Sequence record: OR258281.1
Strand: one strand, 5' to 3'
DNA length: 64,000 nt
Part shown: piece by piece, positions 21,016 to 63,593 of the stretch
Layout: each line of letters starts with the position of its first letter
Numbering within the stretch: position 1 is the stretch's first letter
The notes under the pieces: model-generated
Seen by the model: the letters and a program-made list of their open reading frames with translations, nothing else
What the model was told of the DNA's origin: nothing
Databases searched by the model: none
Translations under genes and position numbers: made by a program

Positions 21016-21103
21016 GGAGAGTTGGGTGAGCGGCTTAAACCAACAGTCTACTAAATTGTCGCAGAGAAATCTGCCGTGGGTTCGAATCCCACACTCTCCG
21101 CCA
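21016..21103 (+). tRNA. trnS: tRNA-Ser, anticodon ACT
   Basis: GGAGAGT/ACTCTCC acceptor, anticodon arm ACAGT-CT-ACT-AA-ATTGT, long variable arm, TTCGAAT T-loop, GCCA end. Confidence 0.9.
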
Positions 21104-31705: not shown

Positions 31706-31797
31706 GGGCCAGTTGGCTAGTGGCCGAAGCCGCTCGACTCATAATCGATTACAGTTAACCAGACACATCACAGGTTCGAATCCTGTCTGGCCCACCA
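31706..31797 (+). tRNA. tRNA with CAT anticodon (Met or Ile2) and a 20-nt extra arm
   Basis: GGGCCAG/CTGGCCC acceptor, CT-CAT-AA loop, TTCGAAT T-loop, ACCA end. Confidence 0.85.
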
Positions 31798-43028: not shown

Positions 43029-43410
43029 AGTAGTGAATAATATTGTAACCAATCTACATACTTTTGAGGTTGAGAGTTACCGGACAAGTAGTGATGGTAC
43101 TTATTATGGAAGGGTATTTAAAAGTACTGAGCATGAAAACCCAATCGTTGTTATTGATAATTTTGGTAGATTTTTAGTTCAAGTAAGAAATAAAACTAAT
43201 ATTTTATTTTTATCAGAGTTGGATTGTACCATAAGAAATGATTATGGAATGTACATACCCGATTGTAGTATCTGGTACGAAGAGTGTACTACAAAATCTG
43301 ACTTCTTCAATATATCAGTACTTCATGATTTATTGGGATTAACTTTTGAGTCCTTTTTGGACACCAAAAAAATATTCCACGCGTTCACCAAAACCGATAA
43401 AAAATCGTGA
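43015..43410 (+). CDS. DEFFN-motif family protein
   Basis: KSDFFNISVLHDLLGL. Confidence 0.65.
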   Translation: MNLNEVVNNIVTNLHTFEVESYRTSSDGTYYGRVFKSTEHENPIVVIDNFGRFLVQVRNKTNILFLSELDCTIRNDYGMYIPDCSIWYEECTTKSDFFNISVLHDLLGLTFESFLDTKKIFHAFTKTDKKS

Positions 43411-43436
43411 AACGCTTTATGAATGTGTCCTATACT
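43408..43436 (+). promoter_or_regulatory. phage-type promoter TGAAAC-N17-TATACT (copy 5)
   Basis: Upstream of a small ORF and the RNA array. Confidence 0.75.
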
Positions 43437-43468
43437 ATAGATGTAGGGAACAGCAGCGAAGAGACACT

Positions 43469-43600
43469 ATGACGGCTGAACAGTTACACGAACTACTTGA
43501 TGCGTTAGCACAAGGTAAAGGAGACGAGTTTCTAAGTGAACTTGGCTTCGAATGTACAAAGAATGATTCAAAGTCTATTGAATGGACTCTGAAGAAATAA
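43469..43600 (+). CDS. small hypothetical protein
   Basis: MTAEQLHELLDALAQGKG..; GAGA SD. Confidence 0.5.
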   Translation: MTAEQLHELLDALAQGKGDEFLSELGFECTKNDSKSIEWTLKK

Positions 43601-43610
43601 AAAGTATTTT

Positions 43611-43661
43611 AGGATTCTTACAGCAACCATAATCTTATGCTTAAAGAAAAAAGAGAATCCT
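43611..43661 (+). ncRNA. ACAGCAA hairpin unit 1
   Basis: AGGATTCT-TACAGCAA..AGAATCCT followed by GTATTAATTTAG. Confidence 0.65.
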
Positions 43662-43671
43662 GTATTAATTT

Positions 43672-43753
43672 AGCAAGATAACATAAAGTCATCACAATGT
43701 ACCAGCCAAACTTAGGGTTGGGTATGTAGCCTGACGCACTACTCTTGCAACCA
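43672..43753 (+). ncRNA. cloverleaf-shaped RNA ending in ACCA with non-canonical loops
   Basis: GCAAGA/TCTTGC, ACAT/ATGT, CCAGCC/GGTTGG and GTAG/CTAC stems in tRNA order. Confidence 0.45.
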
Positions 43754-43759
43754 GTATTG

Positions 43760-43818
43760 AAGAATCTTACAGCAAACATAACCCAATCAAACTTTTAATT
43801 TGAAAATTAAAGATTCTT
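43760..43818 (+). ncRNA. ACAGCAA hairpin unit 2 with a tRNA-Lys(UUU)-like anticodon arm
   Basis: AAGAATCT/AGATTCTT stem; TCAAA-CT-TTT-AA-TTTGA. Confidence 0.7.
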
Positions 43819-43839
43819 GTTTTAATTTAGACCAGATTT

Positions 43840-43898
43840 TGGATTCTTCCAGCAACCATAAAACAATCAAACTTTTAATTTGAAAATTAAAGAATCCA
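43840..43898 (+). ncRNA. ACAGCAA hairpin unit 3 with a tRNA-Lys(UUU)-like anticodon arm
   Basis: TGGATTCT/AGAATCCA stem; identical anticodon arm to unit 2. Confidence 0.7.
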
Positions 43899-43922
43899 GT
43901 ATTAATTAGTACTACAAGTTTT

Positions 43923-44040
43923 TGGAATCAAACAGCAAACAATTCTAATGGGAACTTTTTGTCGCGGGTTCGAATCCCTCCCTCACGTCCCGCGTGAGGT
44001 AGCTCAGCGGTAGAGCGAAAGTAGAAAAAAATTGATTCCA
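43923..44040 (+). ncRNA. ACAGCAA hairpin unit 4 containing a circularly permuted tRNA (YrlA Y-RNA-like)
   Basis: Order is T-arm, loop-closed 7-bp acceptor, TA, D-arm; ACTTT/AAAGT anticodon stem opens into the TGGAATCA/TGATTCCA outer stem. Confidence 0.8.
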
Positions 44041-44070
44041 GTTTTAATTTAAACAACATGTGAATACATC

Positions 44071-44787
44071 ATGAGCAAACTAGATAAAAGTACTTCTGAA
44101 GATAAACCAAAAAAAGTTAAGAAAGTAAAAGAGCAGAAGGTTGAAGTACCAACTGTTAAATTTGCATCTTTAACTATCATGGATAATCCTAAAGTAGCAA
44201 CTCATACAATGACTGGTACTATTAATGATAGTACTCATAAAGAGTTCCGCGAGTTCCTGAATAAAGTATTTGAACACAATCGCAAGATTGATGATGATGC
44301 ACGTGAAAATGCAGAGAAAGTTGAATTTAATAAGATTCACGATCCTGAAGCTAAAAATACCTTTGTCTTTAAGAAAGACAAAATTGAGCGTATCAATCTG
44401 GTTATTGATAGTTATGGCGGTGCATGTCGTAGTATGATGAACATTACTGCACTCATGGAAGCATCCCCTATCCCGATTGATACCTACTGCTTCGGCGTAG
44501 CTATGAGTGCTGGGTTTATGATCTTCGTGCATGGCAAACGCCGCTACGTAGGTACTGCTTCAGATTTGATGACTCACAGCTTAAGTACTATGGTATGGGA
44601 TAATGCACCTAATATCTTGACTCAGGCTGAACAAATCAACAAGCTGAATCAGATCTTCCAGAAGATCATTTCTTCTAAAACTGGTCTTACAATGGACTGG
44701 ATGAAGGAAAATGAAAAGATTGATGTTCATTTCTTTGCAGACGAAGCGGTTAAGCTTAAAATTGCTGACTTCATTGTAGAGTACTGA
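44071..44787 (+). CDS. clpP: ClpP-family protease
   Basis: LVIDSYGG, GVAMSAG (catalytic Ser), LMTHS (His), DVHFFADEAVKL. Confidence 0.85.
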   Translation: MSKLDKSTSEDKPKKVKKVKEQKVEVPTVKFASLTIMDNPKVATHTMTGTINDSTHKEFREFLNKVFEHNRKIDDDARENAEKVEFNKIHDPEAKNTFVFKKDKIERINLVIDSYGGACRSMMNITALMEASPIPIDTYCFGVAMSAGFMIFVHGKRRYVGTASDLMTHSLSTMVWDNAPNILTQAEQINKLNQIFQKIISSKTGLTMDWMKENEKIDVHFFADEAVKLKIADFIVEY

Positions 44788-44797
44788 TAAAATATTT

Positions 44798-44852
44798 TGG
44801 ATTCTTACAGCAACCATAACCTTTACTGATGATAAAAGAAACCTAGAATCCA
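44798..44852 (+). ncRNA. ACAGCAA hairpin unit 5
   Basis: TGGATTCT-TACAGCAA..AGAATCCA-GTTTTAATTTAG; inner TTTA-CT-GAT-GA-TAAA. Confidence 0.65.
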
Positions 44853-44873
44853 GTTTTAATTTAGATATAGCTT

Positions 44874-45200
44874 ATGAATGAACTAGAGACATTAATACAT
44901 GAAGTGCATGATCACTTAGTAAACAATGCTATTTTAGACCCGACTATAAGAATTATAGCTCGTGCAAAAAATTTCAATATTAAGTACTTTAAGTTCAATA
45001 TATACCTGTGTTCCAGTAAAGTACTATATGGTGATGGCTGCGATGCACATGAAGTACCTTACTACTTTGAGAAAGACCATTATTTTAATGCAAGTTTAGA
45101 AAATGATATTAAAATCGATTTCAACACTATGGTAAAAATTGCATCTATACTTGAGTACTATAATATTCCCTATAGGTCATTTAATGATAGAGCCTACTAA
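44874..45200 (+). CDS. DEFFN-motif family protein
   Basis: KDHYFNASLEND. Confidence 0.62.
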   Translation: MNELETLIHEVHDHLVNNAILDPTIRIIARAKNFNIKYFKFNIYLCSSKVLYGDGCDAHEVPYYFEKDHYFNASLENDIKIDFNTMVKIASILEYYNIPYRSFNDRAY

Positions 45201-60069: not shown

Positions 60070-61221
60070 TTATTCAGAATTATAGTTATATGGTGTTTTT
60101 AAAGGAATAAAAATATAAGAATCAGTACCAGTACTTGAGTTATAAGTTACATCACCCGCCCAATACACTTTATCATTCTGGACTACGTAGTTAGAGGTAT
60201 AGTACTGTGTGCAGACAAATTGTACAGGATCAGTACTTAATCCTACACATGGCATAAACCCATATACGTTCTGGTCTGTAGTATTGTTAATACCTAATTG
60301 TCCCTTCACATTATATCCAGAAGAACGTAAACCATCAGTACAGGTTAACGTCATGATATGAGTACTTGAACCACTGTTTTTAATATCCTGTACTAAACCA
60401 TCGTATGCTGTTAATGCAGTCATGTTTGATACGTTTTTAGACGTCAGGGTAAGATCGCCAGCGTAGTTATAACCCGCTCCGTAAATCCGCGTGGTGCCGT
60501 CTGTGGTACTCTTCATCAGAAGAAATGCCTCACCAACCGTAGGCTGTACCTGAAACGGCTCATAGCCGGTAGGATTCGCAAAGGCCGTCCAGGTCTGATA
60601 CGTTGTTAAACCATTATTACTTAACTGACCATTGGCGTTATTACCAACACGCCAGTACTGCCCGTTCTTTATTACCCAGGTATTGACAGAAAGTAGTTCT
60701 ACTTCAGAACATGATGTATTGGTTAATGTCCATGAGGTAACAGTACTGTTATGACCTAAACCAAGCTCGTAGTTAAGGTTAGTACCAATCCCATACAAAT
60801 CACCACTCTTAAGCAAAATAACAGTACTGTTATTTGAACCACCTCTTATTTTTCTTATCTGATCGTATGTACCAACTGAATTTATAATACTCGTACAATC
60901 AGTAAAAACTGTGTTATTCCCGCTTGTACCATATATACCAGTTTTTACTCCACAATGCCAGAAAGTATTATCCCTTTTAACTGCTAACGTCCATGTAGCA
61001 CTTACAAAAACATCCTTAACATCAGTAAGTACTTTACTCCAGTTCAGGTAATCAGTACTTGTTGTGCCTGTACCCGTTTTGTATGATGTACCCGCACCTG
61101 CTGTATAAAGTTCACCATTCTCATATAATAACGCACGATGAGTCTGTGATGCTACCATTTTCTGTATCTTCATCTTTGGTGCTTTATTGCCGTACTGCGA
61201 TATGACAGGAATAGGAAACAT
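60070..61221 (-). CDS. RCC1/BLIP-II-like beta-propeller repeat protein
   Basis: Repeated G.N..G.LG motifs; MFPIP start. Confidence 0.75.
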   Translation of the reverse strand: MFPIPVISQYGNKAPKMKIQKMVASQTHRALLYENGELYTAGAGTSYKTGTGTTSTDYLNWSKVLTDVKDVFVSATWTLAVKRDNTFWHCGVKTGIYGTSGNNTVFTDCTSIINSVGTYDQIRKIRGGSNNSTVILLKSGDLYGIGTNLNYELGLGHNSTVTSWTLTNTSCSEVELLSVNTWVIKNGQYWRVGNNANGQLSNNGLTTYQTWTAFANPTGYEPFQVQPTVGEAFLLMKSTTDGTTRIYGAGYNYAGDLTLTSKNVSNMTALTAYDGLVQDIKNSGSSTHIMTLTCTDGLRSSGYNVKGQLGINNTTDQNVYGFMPCVGLSTDPVQFVCTQYYTSNYVVQNDKVYWAGDVTYNSSTGTDSYIFIPLKTPYNYNSE

Positions 61222-61312
61222 TTTATCTCCTTTTAAATGTATTAAATTTATATTTAGGTACTAAAGCATTACAAAACAAAGACTTCCGCCAGAAGTACCT
61301 AATATAATCATT

Positions 61313-62437
61313 TTATTTAATTGTACGATCCAGTAACTGTAAACCAACAACATTCGCGGTAAAGTACGGTAACAGGTTCTGTACTGAACCAGCATTATAA
61401 TTACCACTTCCATATAAGTTATTATTAACTAATGCATATAACTTCATATAACCAAGCTGCAATGAATCATCACTCGGATTTAAATTAGCAATATATGATG
61501 CTGGAATTAAAGTAAAATTACTTCCGCCAGAACTGGCTGAACCTGTCATGTTCTGCCCGGAAAAATAATAAGAAGTGCCAATCTTAACAATTATCTGATA
61601 CCTGTTCCCCCACATTTTGGAGGGTACACCAAAGGAAATACTCTGCTGTGCAAAACTTCTGTTAGTGTTTGCTGACACACCATTACCTAACTGACCACTA
61701 AACTGTGTACCACATGTATATAATCCTGAAGTACTTAATACGTACATACACAAATAACCCATCTGTACATCAGTAACCGTACCACTTATTCCAGTAACCT
61801 GCTGGAACCGGTTAGCAGTTGTTACTGTACTGTAACCTAACTGTAAATTACTGTTAGAACCACATGTATATACAGTACCGTCTTTGTGTAGTACTGCAAC
61901 TGAAATAGAGTCCATCGTGAATGATATCTTGTTAACTGACGTTCTTAATTGTGTAAAAGATGTAACCGCCGTTGTATTTCCAGTACCTAACTGACCACTA
62001 CTGTTACGACCCATACCAAGTAAATTATCATTATTATCTATAATATAAACATTCTCTGTATTATAATATAATGCACGGTAGTTATTATTGTATTGAACAA
62101 AATATGAGGTACAATCCGTATAAGTATTATATGTAACAGATGAACCAGTAAATCGGTTTAAACCGGCTGTCTGCCACGTACCATCATTCTTTCGTACTAA
62201 AGTACCACTCTGATCGCTCGCCCATACGTCATTTACATTACTGTTGATCTTCCTCCACGTAGTAATAGCAGTAGTATCTCCAGTACCAAACATACCGTTA
62301 CTGTTCTGACCTATAGCATATAAATCACCCGAAGTACTTAATACCATCAAGCCATTAAACATCGCTACGTACTTCTTTATTCCGGTAATAACCGGAATGT
62401 TATTACCGTACTTGCTTATAATTGGAATAGGAAACAT
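61313..62437 (-). CDS. RCC1/BLIP-II-like beta-propeller repeat protein
   Basis: GQNSNGMFG, GRNSSGQLG, GSNSNLQLG repeats; MFPIP start. Confidence 0.78.
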   Translation of the reverse strand: MFPIPIISKYGNNIPVITGIKKYVAMFNGLMVLSTSGDLYAIGQNSNGMFGTGDTTAITTWRKINSNVNDVWASDQSGTLVRKNDGTWQTAGLNRFTGSSVTYNTYTDCTSYFVQYNNNYRALYYNTENVYIIDNNDNLLGMGRNSSGQLGTGNTTAVTSFTQLRTSVNKISFTMDSISVAVLHKDGTVYTCGSNSNLQLGYSTVTTANRFQQVTGISGTVTDVQMGYLCMYVLSTSGLYTCGTQFSGQLGNGVSANTNRSFAQQSISFGVPSKMWGNRYQIIVKIGTSYYFSGQNMTGSASSGGSNFTLIPASYIANLNPSDDSLQLGYMKLYALVNNNLYGSGNYNAGSVQNLLPYFTANVVGLQLLDRTIK

Positions 62438-62447
62438 ATTCTCCCCC

Positions 62448-63593
62448 TTATTTGTATGGTGTAGGCATTAATCTGTAAACAGGAGTATTTGTAGTACCAA
62501 GTGTCATAGCCGCACCACCCGCTGCATATACTAATCCCTGATATACATAATACGATGCGTTCACTATGTTACACATGTATGTTATCGAACTCAACGTCTG
62601 TGACTGTACTGTACCAGCACATGCAACAAAGTTAGTGGGCGAAGTAGAAGTACTTATAGCAAGACGACCGGAGTTGTTGTCCCCAGTACTCATCATCTGT
62701 GAAGCACCAATAACAAAAGTACTGTAGAAATTCATAGAACTTATACGGTTAATTGCACTCAACCCTGGATTGTAAAATGCTAACTGTCCAGTTGTAGTAC
62801 CATTACCTGTACCGTAACTTGCACCACATGTTCTTATTGTTCCGTCACTTAAAAGTAATGTACAGTTATACTGCCCCGCACCAACATCTAGTACCGTTAA
62901 TCCCGTACCCGGCGTGTACTGACCAAATGTAGTCTGAGTAGAAGTCTTTGAACCAAATCCTAATGTTGCTACACTGTTTGTACCACATCGCCACGCAGTA
63001 CCATCATTCTTTAATATCCATGTACCATATAACGTGCACTGGATCTTCTTAACGTTTGTACCACTCGTTAATGCTGTCCAGTTATATGTTCCAGTACCAC
63101 TACCAGCACCTAATGCATAGTACTGATTACTGCCTATTCCCCATATCTGACCTGAACCATCAACTACAAATAACCTAGCTGGCGTATCATTATATCCCTG
63201 TATAGCCTGTATAGCACTAATGTCAAAACGAGAAAATGCAGAAGTAATATCCTGATAGGTAGTACTGTTAGATATAGAATATCCTAACGCAGAAGTGAAT
63301 ATCGTGTTCAATGAACCTGAACCATATACCTTGTTATCCTTAGTAATCAATATACTGAAATTACCACAACATGCAAATAAACGTACATCATTACGTAATA
63401 ACGCCCAATTTCCTGTAATGTCTGTAGTTGTACCTGTACCGTACATCCCACTCGTGTTTGCACCCAATGCATAAGTCTCGCCTGAATTATATTGCAGTAC
63501 TACACTCTTTGCCTCCGGGCCAGTAGTTAAAGTCTTTATTCCCGGATTACTAGGCTGTACCCTAAGTGAACTTATAATCGGAATCGGAAACAT
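62448..63593 (-). CDS. RCC1/BLIP-II-like beta-propeller repeat protein
   Basis: GANTSGMYG, GSNQYYALG, GDNNSGRLA repeats; MFPIP start. Confidence 0.78.
   Translation of the reverse strand: MFPIPIISSLRVQPSNPGIKTLTTGPEAKSVVLQYNSGETYALGANTSGMYGTGTTTDITGNWALLRNDVRLFACCGNFSILITKDNKVYGSGSLNTIFTSALGYSISNSTTYQDITSAFSRFDISAIQAIQGYNDTPARLFVVDGSGQIWGIGSNQYYALGAGSGTGTYNWTALTSGTNVKKIQCTLYGTWILKNDGTAWRCGTNSVATLGFGSKTSTQTTFGQYTPGTGLTVLDVGAGQYNCTLLLSDGTIRTCGASYGTGNGTTTGQLAFYNPGLSAINRISSMNFYSTFVIGASQMMSTGDNNSGRLAISTSTSPTNFVACAGTVQSQTLSSITYMCNIVNASYYVYQGLVYAAGGAAMTLGTTNTPVYRLMPTPYK

Follow-up and report, generated by a model that had tools for sequence, protein, structure and literature searches.

The stretch of DNA analysed here, hereafter the window, comprises the last 64 kb of record OR258281.1 of the Xanthomonas jumbo phage XaC1 (349 kb; host X. 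vesicatoria), and its region 43400-45000 is 100% identical to that record. At the DNA level, the nearest relatives of XaC1 are Eneladusvirus phages (Serratia BF, Erwinia pEa_SNUABM and Yersinia fHe-Yen9). Five short units, each opening with one arm of a closing stem and an ACAGCAA-type motif beside it, lie around a gene for a ClpP-related head maturation protease; the annotation of the record labels none of the five. These units are members of a modular family, probably of Y RNA type, which is linked, across phages, to genes of the DUF2828 family, whose proteins are Ro60-like in their predicted fold.

Both direct reading and a script place ACAGCAA (CCAGCAA in unit 3) 1-2 nt on from a 5' arm of 8-9 nt. 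In all five units, the perfect complement of this arm sits 33-99 nt downstream, followed by G-U and then by an AT-rich tail. Each unit has a T-rich lead-in and a tail of the form [A/T]GT[A/T]TTAATT, and the stems of the five differ from one another by compensated changes. When every CAGCAA on both strands of the window was scanned for a perfectly complementary arm of at least 8 nt, situated 1-2 nt before the motif and pairing within 160 nt, 5 of 39 sites passed, all five of them on the + strand. An earlier reading made from the letters alone (the sequence-only reading) had claimed an array of five such units, four before clpP and one after it. Exactly five are present, with stems of 8-9 bp, ACAGCAA or CCAGCAA and G-U after the 3' arm, and the protease gene does separate units 4 and 5 (Table 1). 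Single-sequence folding backs the closing stems, but its z values of -0.4 to -2.2 are not significant alone.

Table 1. Positions of the units, their inner structures and the neighbouring gene in the window
Feature	Position	Strand	Details
Unit 1	43611-43663	+	5' arm 43611-43618; ACAGCAA 43620-43626; 3' arm 43654-43661; G-U 43662-43663; AT-rich tail to 43672
Unit 1, inner hairpin	43633-43647	+	4 bp; loop AUGCUUA, non-canonical
Unit 2	43760-43820	+	5' arm 43760-43768; ACAGCAA 43769-43775; 3' arm 43810-43818; G-U 43819-43820
Unit 2, anticodon-arm-like hairpin	43787-43803	+	5 bp; 17 nt; loop CUUUUAA (UUU)
Unit 3	43840-43900	+	5' arm 43840-43848; CCAGCAA 43849-43855; 3' arm 43890-43898; G-U 43899-43900
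Unit 3, hairpin	43867-43883	+	identical to the 17-nt hairpin of unit 2 (5 bp; loop CUUUUAA)
Unit 4 (long unit)	43923-44042	+	5' arm 43923-43931; ACAGCAA 43932-43938; 3' arm 44032-44040; G-U 44041-44042
Unit 4, permuted tRNA-like core	43955-44021	+	T arm 43964-43980; acceptor-like 7-bp stem 43981-43999 with 5-nt closing loop; D arm 44002-44016
ClpP-related head maturation protease gene (XaC1_523)	44071-44787	+	between units 4 and 5; from annotation; NCBIfam NF045542 and ClpP models match below cut-off
Unit 5	44798-44854	+	5' arm 44798-44805; ACAGCAA 44807-44813; 3' arm 44845-44852; G-U 44853-44854; tail to 44863
Unit 5, hairpin	44822-44836	+	4 bp; loop CUGAUGA (GAU)

As to what the stems enclose, the sequence-only reading was correct in assigning one and the same UUU hairpin to units 2 and 3 and a GAU loop to unit 5. 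Its possible GCT loop in unit 1 holds insofar as GCU does occur there, but inside a non-canonical loop, though relatives carry CUGCUAA at the equivalent place. For unit 4, it had seen a whole permuted tRNA, which was overstated: T arm, acceptor-like stem and D arm are indeed permuted, but the core has no anticodon loop, the scaffold occupying the place of the anticodon arm, and the unit is rather YrlA-like.

Two other identities were tried and rejected. ARAGORN and the Rfam tRNA model find no tRNA in the 43.6-44.9 kb region (ARAGORN places eight tRNA genes elsewhere in the window) and unit 4 is not a complete cloverleaf, so the units are neither true nor permuted tRNA genes. A cassette of intrinsic terminator or promoter and stem-loop was discarded because, in a scan, none of the units coincided with a terminator-like site and promoter-like sites were not in excess. 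With unit 5 as the query, the sole blastn match was XaC1 itself; the family becomes visible only through motif and structure. Between units 1 and 2 (window 43673-43750, + strand) lies a possible sixth, non-canonical unit, in which a 6-bp closing stem GCAAGA/UCUUGC surrounds a G+C-richer hairpin and is followed by CCAGUAUUG, resembling a unit tail; it is devoid of ACAGCAA and its folding is not significant (z -1.27).

Two Rfam families recurred in a permissive scan of the region, YrlA matching unit 4 and Dictyostelium Class I RNA, discussed below, matching units 1, 5, 2 and 3. Unit 4 reaches 40.9 bits with the YrlA model (E 3.5e-7), below the gathering score of 69, and relatives score 26-42 bits, mostly over model positions 23-87 only, with matches of 36-42 bits in several lineages. 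Reading of the sequence and the cmscan alignment agree that T arm, acceptor-like closed stem and D arm follow one another in permuted order, as in the tRNA-like domain of YrlA. The RNAalifold consensus of 18 long units from different lineages (unit 4 and 17 relatives) consists of a T arm, a 7-bp acceptor-like stem and a D arm. Compensatory change is found in 12 of its 16 pairs, and all three arms covary.

The YrlA-like part of unit 4 also provided the lead to a protein. It has a 75%-identical counterpart in the unrelated Klebsiella phage FBKp34 (Stephanstirmvirinae), and this counterpart belongs to a group of three ACAGCAA-stem units that come immediately downstream of a DUF2828 gene of 479 aa, the product of which belongs to PHROG 850, named 'RNA-binding protein'. 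The DUF2828 gene of XaC1 itself, XaC1_252, is located outside the window (record 128391-129977), and the units are found at ~328.6-329.8 kb of the record. A PHROGs scan recognized no Ro60/TROVE partner among ten large ORFs of the window, and neither further units nor tRNA genes occur near XaC1_252 or in the 45 kb preceding the window. DUF2828 relatives are present in 711 phage records, frequently labelled 'Ro-like RNA binding protein' or 'vWFA protein', and number thousands among metagenomic proteins.

Units adjoin the DUF2828 gene, on its strand, not only in FBKp34 but also in Salmonella phage Mushroom (three units, among tRNA genes), Mycobacterium phage Whirlwind (three units just downstream of the gene), Campylobacter phage CP81 (two just upstream) and Vibrio phage ValKK3 (one just upstream). 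In BF and fHe-Yen9-03, seven to nine units are embedded in tRNA islands, far from the DUF2828 gene as in XaC1.

For a survey of DUF2828 loci, all of them partial contigs, we required, besides CAGCAA, a preceding arm of 7 nt or more with 0-4 nt between the two, and a perfectly complementary arm no further than 175 nt away. As perfect stems and exact CAGCAA are needed, diverged units are missed and the invariance of the motif is not measurable in this way. In the first 80 loci, metagenomic viral loci picked only for encoding a DUF2828 relative, 141 units occupy the gene's strand (65 loci) and 11 the other strand, with 6.2 found in shuffled sequence; of the 141, 91 are situated upstream of the DUF2828 gene at a distance of no more than 500 nt. 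After two further sets had been added, 132 non-overlapping loci contained 245 units on the gene's strand against 17 on the other, with at least one unit in 103 loci. The reciprocal search, by the RNA pattern alone, yielded at least 120 viral stretches, 80 of which are covered by the analyses reported here. A DUF2828 relative is carried by 20 of these 80, in all 20 on the same strand and at a median distance of 191 nt, and tRNA or tmRNA genes by 73 (1117 genes in 726 kb).

A covariance model, designated R1, was built from 37 short units of different phages and is blind to units with long cargo such as unit 4. Within the window it detects units 1, 2, 3 and 5 at 55.3, 61.6, 67.2 and 57.6 bits; since these four belong to the seed, their own scores follow by construction, and the informative part is that nothing else in the window matches (next-best match, 13.9 bits). 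Over 89 loci R1 gave 83 matches at E <= 0.001, each of the 83 on the strand of the DUF2828 gene. Outside XaC1, the scaffold recurs by DUF2828 genes in many unrelated phages. In the alignment of these matches, 98.6% of the closing-stem cells are paired and both-side changes are seen in 7 of 7 pairs. The covariation score of the stem is 0.823, versus 0.166 in shuffles (none of 500 as high) and at most 0.105 with a slid partner, the latter being the fairer control because the alignment was fitted to the model. Among the 141 units, U stands two positions before CAGCAA in 87%, the 3' arm is followed by G (88%), U (76%) and U (66%), the outermost pair is A-U in 115 units, and the final eight bases ahead of the 3' arm are 32-69% A.

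Such conservation bears on two explanations that would deprive the units of a role as RNAs in their own right. Functionless elements, either decayed tRNA genes or small mobile repeats, would account for tRNA-derived pieces and for several copies within tRNA islands. Yet the closing stem and all three arms of the tRNA-like core show compensatory covariation, the stems of relatives display no random decay, one scaffold extends across very distant phages and its motif is strand-specific; this explanation is, in our opinion, exceedingly improbable. The units might also be cis-acting parts of long transcripts, that is, processing sites, mRNA-stabilising hairpins or weak terminators, for instance bracketing the protease gene. 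Their intergenic position and T-rich flanks, the ORF bracketed by units 4 and 5 and the company of tRNA genes that need processing from long transcripts would fit. We nevertheless regard this as improbable, given that no unit coincides with a terminator-like site in the scan, that the stems are AU-rich and enclose 35-100 nt, that the single-stranded 7-mer stays constant in phages of Proteobacteria, Actinobacteria and Campylobacter although the stems change, that many units contain a YrlA-like core, and that the linkage to one protein family is tight. The protease gene is a neighbour of the units rather than a demonstrated member of the system.

In relatives, public records carry other annotations over stretches homologous to the units. 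In fHe-Yen9-03 (LT960552.1; our locus L003, 4017-4069) one is labelled '-35/-10 signal' and 'ribosome binding site', and two in BF (locus L002, 2923-2995 and 3236-3330) are labelled as hypothetical small ORFs; units are thus hidden under other labels. In phage Mushroom (NC_041923.1; locus L007, 4082-6220) the annotated strand of the tRNAs is opposite to the DUF2828 gene, whereas Rfam puts all of them on the + strand of the locus, the same as gene and units, and the tRNA strand in the annotation table seems to be wrong for that reversed locus. Two tRNA islands with DUF2828 and units, on metagenomic viral contigs (L029, 1288-1614; L065, 804-1018), also hold permuted tmRNA genes (alpha_tmRNA, 142.5 bits; tmRNA_permuted, 79-89 bits).

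The relationship of DUF2828 to Ro60 emerged from structure. An AlphaFold model of a 94%-identical relative, built on a 77-sequence alignment (pLDDT 92.7, pTM 0.90), was compared with the PDB by Foldseek. The top six matches are all Ro60 (TM 0.44-0.58), from Xenopus (1yvr/1yvp; 1yvr E 2.8e-10, TM 0.58), Thermus phage phiLo (9kop/9l5y) and Deinococcus (2nvo), and isolated vWA domains come next. The DxSxS metal-site (MIDAS) motif of the vWA domain is invariant in the 77 DUF2828 sequences. Judged from this model, DUF2828 has the Ro60 fold, a ring of HEAT-like repeats with a vWA domain, which is not apparent by sequence. In agreement with this result, the Felixounavirus DUF2828 member Bas63 gp130 was described as structurally similar to Ro60 (preprint 10.1101/2024.10.10.617714). 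The Ro60/TROVE class, which the sequence-only reading had suggested among possible partners, was hence right in kind, the co-occurring gene being DUF2828.

Cargo was classified in two sets, the 245 distinct units of the DUF2828 loci and 205 distinct units of the independent pattern-derived set, a canonical anticodon-type hairpin being defined by at least 4 bp and a 7-nt loop of the form Y-U-NNN-R-N. T-loop (tRNA-like) cargo is present in 44 and 41 units and an anticodon-type hairpin in 56 and 70, respectively, where shuffling predicts about 11 and 5.9 such hairpins. Over the ~450 distinct units, a permuted tRNA-like core occurs in roughly 20%, and anticodon-loop mimics make up about a third of the non-tRNA-like cargoes, compared to 4-5% in shuffles. 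The idea of a constant scaffold with exchangeable tRNA-derived cargo is supported by these counts. In the place of the anticodon, UUU (8 and 18 cases in the two sets) and UGU (5 and 9) are the most frequent triplets, followed by UGA, CAU and GUU in the DUF2828-loci set and by UGA, UCU and GGA in the pattern-derived one. In comparison with 1113 tRNA genes of the same loci, UUU is over-represented 9-fold (p 9e-10) and UGU 4-fold (p 0.0016).

Contrary to the sequence-only reading, anticodon arms of real tRNAs are not being swapped freely into the scaffold. The same AU-rich stems recurrently carry either CUUUUAA or CUUGUAA, unlike the varied, G+C-richer arms of resident tRNA genes, and we rejected the possibility that the hairpins are copies of the phage's own anticodon arms because of this difference. 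Cargo does vary; still, with a few AU-rich stems recurring under these two loops, what dominates among the anticodon-like modules appears to be a single conserved hairpin fitted with few different loops.

Some further observations concern cargo. In about two thirds of the anticodon-like loops, position 36 is U and A-A comes next, as in the loops of tRNAs reading ANN codons (Lys, Thr, Asn, Ser-GCU, Ile, Met and Arg-UCU), which share the t6A37 modification; AT-rich composition may contribute to this pattern. The last 109 kb of the XaC1 genome contain no tRNA-Lys(UUU) gene, whereas two units show a UUU loop. BF and fHe-Yen9-03 each possess five units with T-loop cargo, some with decayed D arms. 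Long cargo of yet another, third kind is conserved between the two phages, in a unit of 153 nt that combines the common scaffold with three hairpins and no T-loop (L002, 2303-2455 in Serratia BF; L003, 3622-3774 in Yersinia fHe-Yen9-03).

The nearest known counterparts of this arrangement are Ro60 and its Y RNAs. Ro60 binds the stem of a Y RNA, the other end of which tethers an effector such as PNPase, and one Y RNA, YrlA, mimics tRNA and is handled by tRNA enzymes (PMC4201824). The Ro60 protein of Thermus phage phiLo binds two phage-encoded Y-like RNAs, Yrl1/2, as well as host PNPase (PMC12135203), and in jumbo phages TROVE proteins are paired with RNA repair genes (PMC7824862). Ro60 homologues with Y RNAs, tRNA-like YrlA included, are thus known from both bacteria and phages (PMC4201824, PMC12135203). 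The general system, a phage Ro60-like protein with modular Y RNAs among which is a tRNA mimic, is already known, and the 'undescribed system' announced by the sequence-only reading does not stand in that form.

The units share with YrlA and other bacterial and phage Y RNAs (RF02553) the pairing of the ends, a conserved single-stranded motif beside the stem and a variable module next to it. They also share the combination, within a genome, of one RNA having a permuted tRNA-like domain (T arm, acceptor-like stem, D arm) with shorter RNAs lacking it, the usual position beside, and on the same strand as, the gene of a ring protein (HEAT-repeat ring and vWA domain), and the association with RNA repair genes. 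The differences are equally clear. The protein is DUF2828 (PF11443 and PF25043), Ro60-like in fold only. Bacterial Y RNAs have GNCGAAN0-1G or CGAA near the 5' end (PMC4201824, PMC12135203), whereas all units here have ACAGCAA or CCAGCAA, within a handle (U)(A/U)CAGCAA plus 3' G-U. Only the tRNA-like core corresponds to the Rfam YrlA model. Up to 7-9 units are found per tRNA island, and many short ones carry look-alikes of anticodon loops, apparently undescribed for Y RNAs. Finally, whereas Y RNA genes are expected within a few kb of the Ro60 gene and on its strand, the XaC1 RNAs are ~200 kb from the protein gene; in most other phages the two are close. The 2014 survey of YrlA (Chen et al., PMC4201824) was restricted to genomes with an annotated TROVE protein and used a differently defined motif.

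A second comparison is with phage tRNAs that rescue infection from anticodon nucleases. The PARIS nuclease AriB cuts tRNA-Lys(UUU) and tRNA-Thr(UGU) first and tRNA-Asn(GUU) second (PMC12409363); PrrC cuts tRNA-Lys, a UUU target, and retron-Eco7 depletes tRNA-Tyr (PMC11555353). Rescue is provided by tRNA-Lys, tRNA-Thr and tRNA-Asn of T5 against PARIS, by tRNA-Tyr against retron-Eco7 and by tRNA-Lys against PrrC (PMC11464382, PMC12409363, PMC11555353). The units resemble these tRNAs in their tRNA-island setting and in the prominence of UUU, then UGU. Rescuing tRNAs are, however, complete and functional and replace the cleaved ones. Mounted on a protein handle, a unit has either the body but no anticodon loop or the anticodon-like hairpin but no body, and therefore cannot decode.

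From the established facts on Ro60, Y RNAs and anticodon nucleases we infer that it is the units which serve the DUF2828 protein as Y RNAs, their cargo engaging proteins directed at tRNA. On balance, the five units are probably small non-coding RNA genes of the Y RNA kind, putative partners of the DUF2828 Ro60-like protein, with a role connected with the tRNA pool. Each unit would be expressed as a discrete RNA, the 5' and 3' ends of which pair into a stem of 7-9 bp. This stem, the single-stranded (U)(A/U)CAGCAA and the 3' G-U would make a constant handle bound by the phage's own Ro60-like protein, the DUF2828 member XaC1_252. The variable middle would display a piece of tRNA, either an elbow-and-acceptor body (unit 4, YrlA-like) or a look-alike of an anticodon arm (units 2, 3 and 5, perhaps 1), and, as in known Y RNAs, this cargo would join the ring protein with tRNA-recognising proteins. 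In an infected cell, the RNAs would most likely serve to protect or service the tRNA pool while host defences cut tRNAs, either through look-alike substrates occupying anticodon nucleases or through tethering of two enzymes whose genes neighbour that of the protein, the RNA ligase and the CCA-adding enzyme. That the commonest loops coincide with the commonest targets of the nucleases speaks for a role as decoy or sponge, to the extent that a correlation can.

The gene neighbourhood, in turn, favours a platform for repair, which is compatible with the decoy role, the two not being exclusive. XaC1_252 is surrounded by genes for an RNA ligase of DRB0094 type (TIGR02306), a HAD hydrolase, a ribosome hibernation factor, a CCA-adding enzyme and a Nudix hydrolase, and in phage CBB, too, the DUF2828 gene is near RNA ligase and tRNA enzymes. 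Taken without any decoy function, the same RNAs and protein would serve as a tether or platform for RNA repair and quality control, by which the Ro-like ring would be supplied with tRNAs that are damaged or misfolded, or with the phage's ligase and CCA-adding enzyme, in the manner of the bacterial Ro60-Y RNA-PNPase complex. Besides the neighbourhood, the mycobacteriophage LeBron, with a Ro-like protein, RNA ligase and polynucleotide kinase (PMC13148394), speaks for this view, as does the fact that tethering is the established role of Y RNAs (PMC4201824, PMC12135203). Since a platform leaves unexplained both why anticodon-like loops concentrate on UUU/UGU and why cargo stems differ from real tRNA stems, we think it rather unlikely to be the entire function.

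To return to the units as Y RNAs of DUF2828 acting on the tRNA pool, loss of the Ro60-like gene of Felixounavirus sensitises the phage to the Ppl defence, and the authors of that report supposed, without identifying them, that Y RNAs exist among the 'tRNA genes' downstream of it (10.1101/2024.10.10.617714).

A number of facts weigh against this interpretation. The sole reported DUF2828 phenotype just mentioned concerns Ppl, which is not known to cut tRNA. No motif of the GNCGAA type, as present in known bacterial Y RNAs, occurs in the handle, and unit 4 stays, as stated above, well short of the YrlA gathering score (40.9 against 69 bits). Phmmer and a seven-sequence profile against the PDB gave no Ro60 match for DUF2828, the precomputed Pfam domains of which are PF11443 and PF25043 only, not TROVE, and no NCBIfam model matches it; with sequence searches giving nothing, the link between DUF2828 and Ro60 comes from fold comparison only. 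In XaC1 and its Eneladusvirus relatives, where ~200 kb separate units and DUF2828 gene, linkage exists at the genome level only, and 60 of the 80 pattern-found stretches have no DUF2828 gene within the stretch, reflecting either a distant gene as in XaC1 or a limit of the data. Over half of the cargoes belong to neither class, tRNA-like or anticodon-like, and AT-rich composition may be a partial source of the UUU excess.

The second Rfam match leads to an unexpected quarter. With the Dictyostelium Class I RNA model (RF01414), units 1, 5, 2 and 3 score 30.4, 27.1, 19.6 and 18.2 bits, respectively, below the gathering score of 41.5. Units of five phage lineages match the model at 25-33 bits (maximum 33.1), none at the gathering score. 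The match runs through a shared CUUACAGCAA adjoining the short terminal stem. Four features define Class I RNAs (Kjellin et al. 2021, PMC7919456): their ends are joined by a 6-bp stem, an 11-nt motif in which five positions are near-invariant stands by the 5' arm, the middle varies, and the 3' end is CUGU. Units 1 and 5 have UUCUUACAGCAA after the start of the stem and CC(U/A)GU at the 3' end, and agree with 10 of the 11 motif positions, all five near-invariant ones included. In both groups the ends are joined by a short stem (6 bp in Class I RNAs, 7-9 bp in the units), the 5' arm leads straight into a conserved motif with UUACAGCAA as its last part, the region in between is AU-rich and variable, and U-G-U comes after the outermost pair at the 3' end; Class I RNAs are 42-65 nt in length and the short units about 50-65 nt. 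The U before the motif, the outermost A-U pair and the G-U after the stem, which are features of the whole unit family, fit the Class I description as well.

Unlike the units, which are part of a phage genome, Class I RNAs are products of eukaryotic genes, which have a DUSE promoter located ~60 nt upstream and a terminator of the T-run type, and no tRNA-like cargo has been described for them. They were reported to be absent outside Dictyostelia (PMC7919456), the outgroup search having included one bacterium, Myxococcus xanthus, and mentioning no phage genome. The RRM protein CIBP/Rnp1A is the only direct binder of a Class I RNA shown so far, and DDB_G0281243, of no known function, co-purifies with one (10.1101/2020.04.05.026054). 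Members of DUF2828 are also present in eukaryotes, as papers on plants attest. The likeness of the units to Class I RNAs is real, and one may speculate that the ACAGCAA-stem handle is the recognition element of the DUF2828 branch everywhere, Class I RNAs being the Y RNAs of a eukaryotic DUF2828-type protein, though we hold this to be doubtful.

Outside the array, three features of the window deserve mention. ARAGORN predicts a tRNA-Ser with anticodon ACU at 21016-21103 (+; Rfam tRNA 52.5 bits), in which an unmodified wobble A would be unusual, and a tRNA-Met(CAU) at 31706-31797 (+) is 92 nt long, ~15 nt above the usual length, possibly owing to an insertion or a long extra arm. The third feature is a set of paralogous ORFs, three in tandem (60070-63593, - strand; 383, 374 and 381 aa), whose match is to PHROG 4219, 'regulator of chromosome condensation' (RCC1-like repeats), in its C-terminal half and, at a weaker level, to a family of tail proteins.

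Within the searchable literature, the ACAGCAA-stem scaffold, its link to DUF2828 and its anticodon-like cargo appear to be undescribed. DUF2828, one member of which is reported to counter a bacterial defence and whose RNAs were previously only guessed, gains a candidate RNA partner defined by sequence. The units, now unannotated or overlapping features labelled as tRNA or promoter, would be correctly recorded with the help of a covariance model. Class I RNAs have so far been thought unique to dictyostelids, with no known mechanism, and their likeness to the units provides a concrete clue for finding out how they work; if the speculation on a common handle were true, an orphan class of eukaryotic RNAs, an orphan protein family of phages, bacteria and eukaryotes and phage counter-defence would be linked. 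The concept of Y RNA is itself enlarged by a single protein handle that bears up to seven to nine different cargoes per phage. And since the anticodon look-alikes concentrate on the loops cut by known anticodon nucleases, a layer of counter-defence based on RNA decoys or RNA tethers becomes testable.

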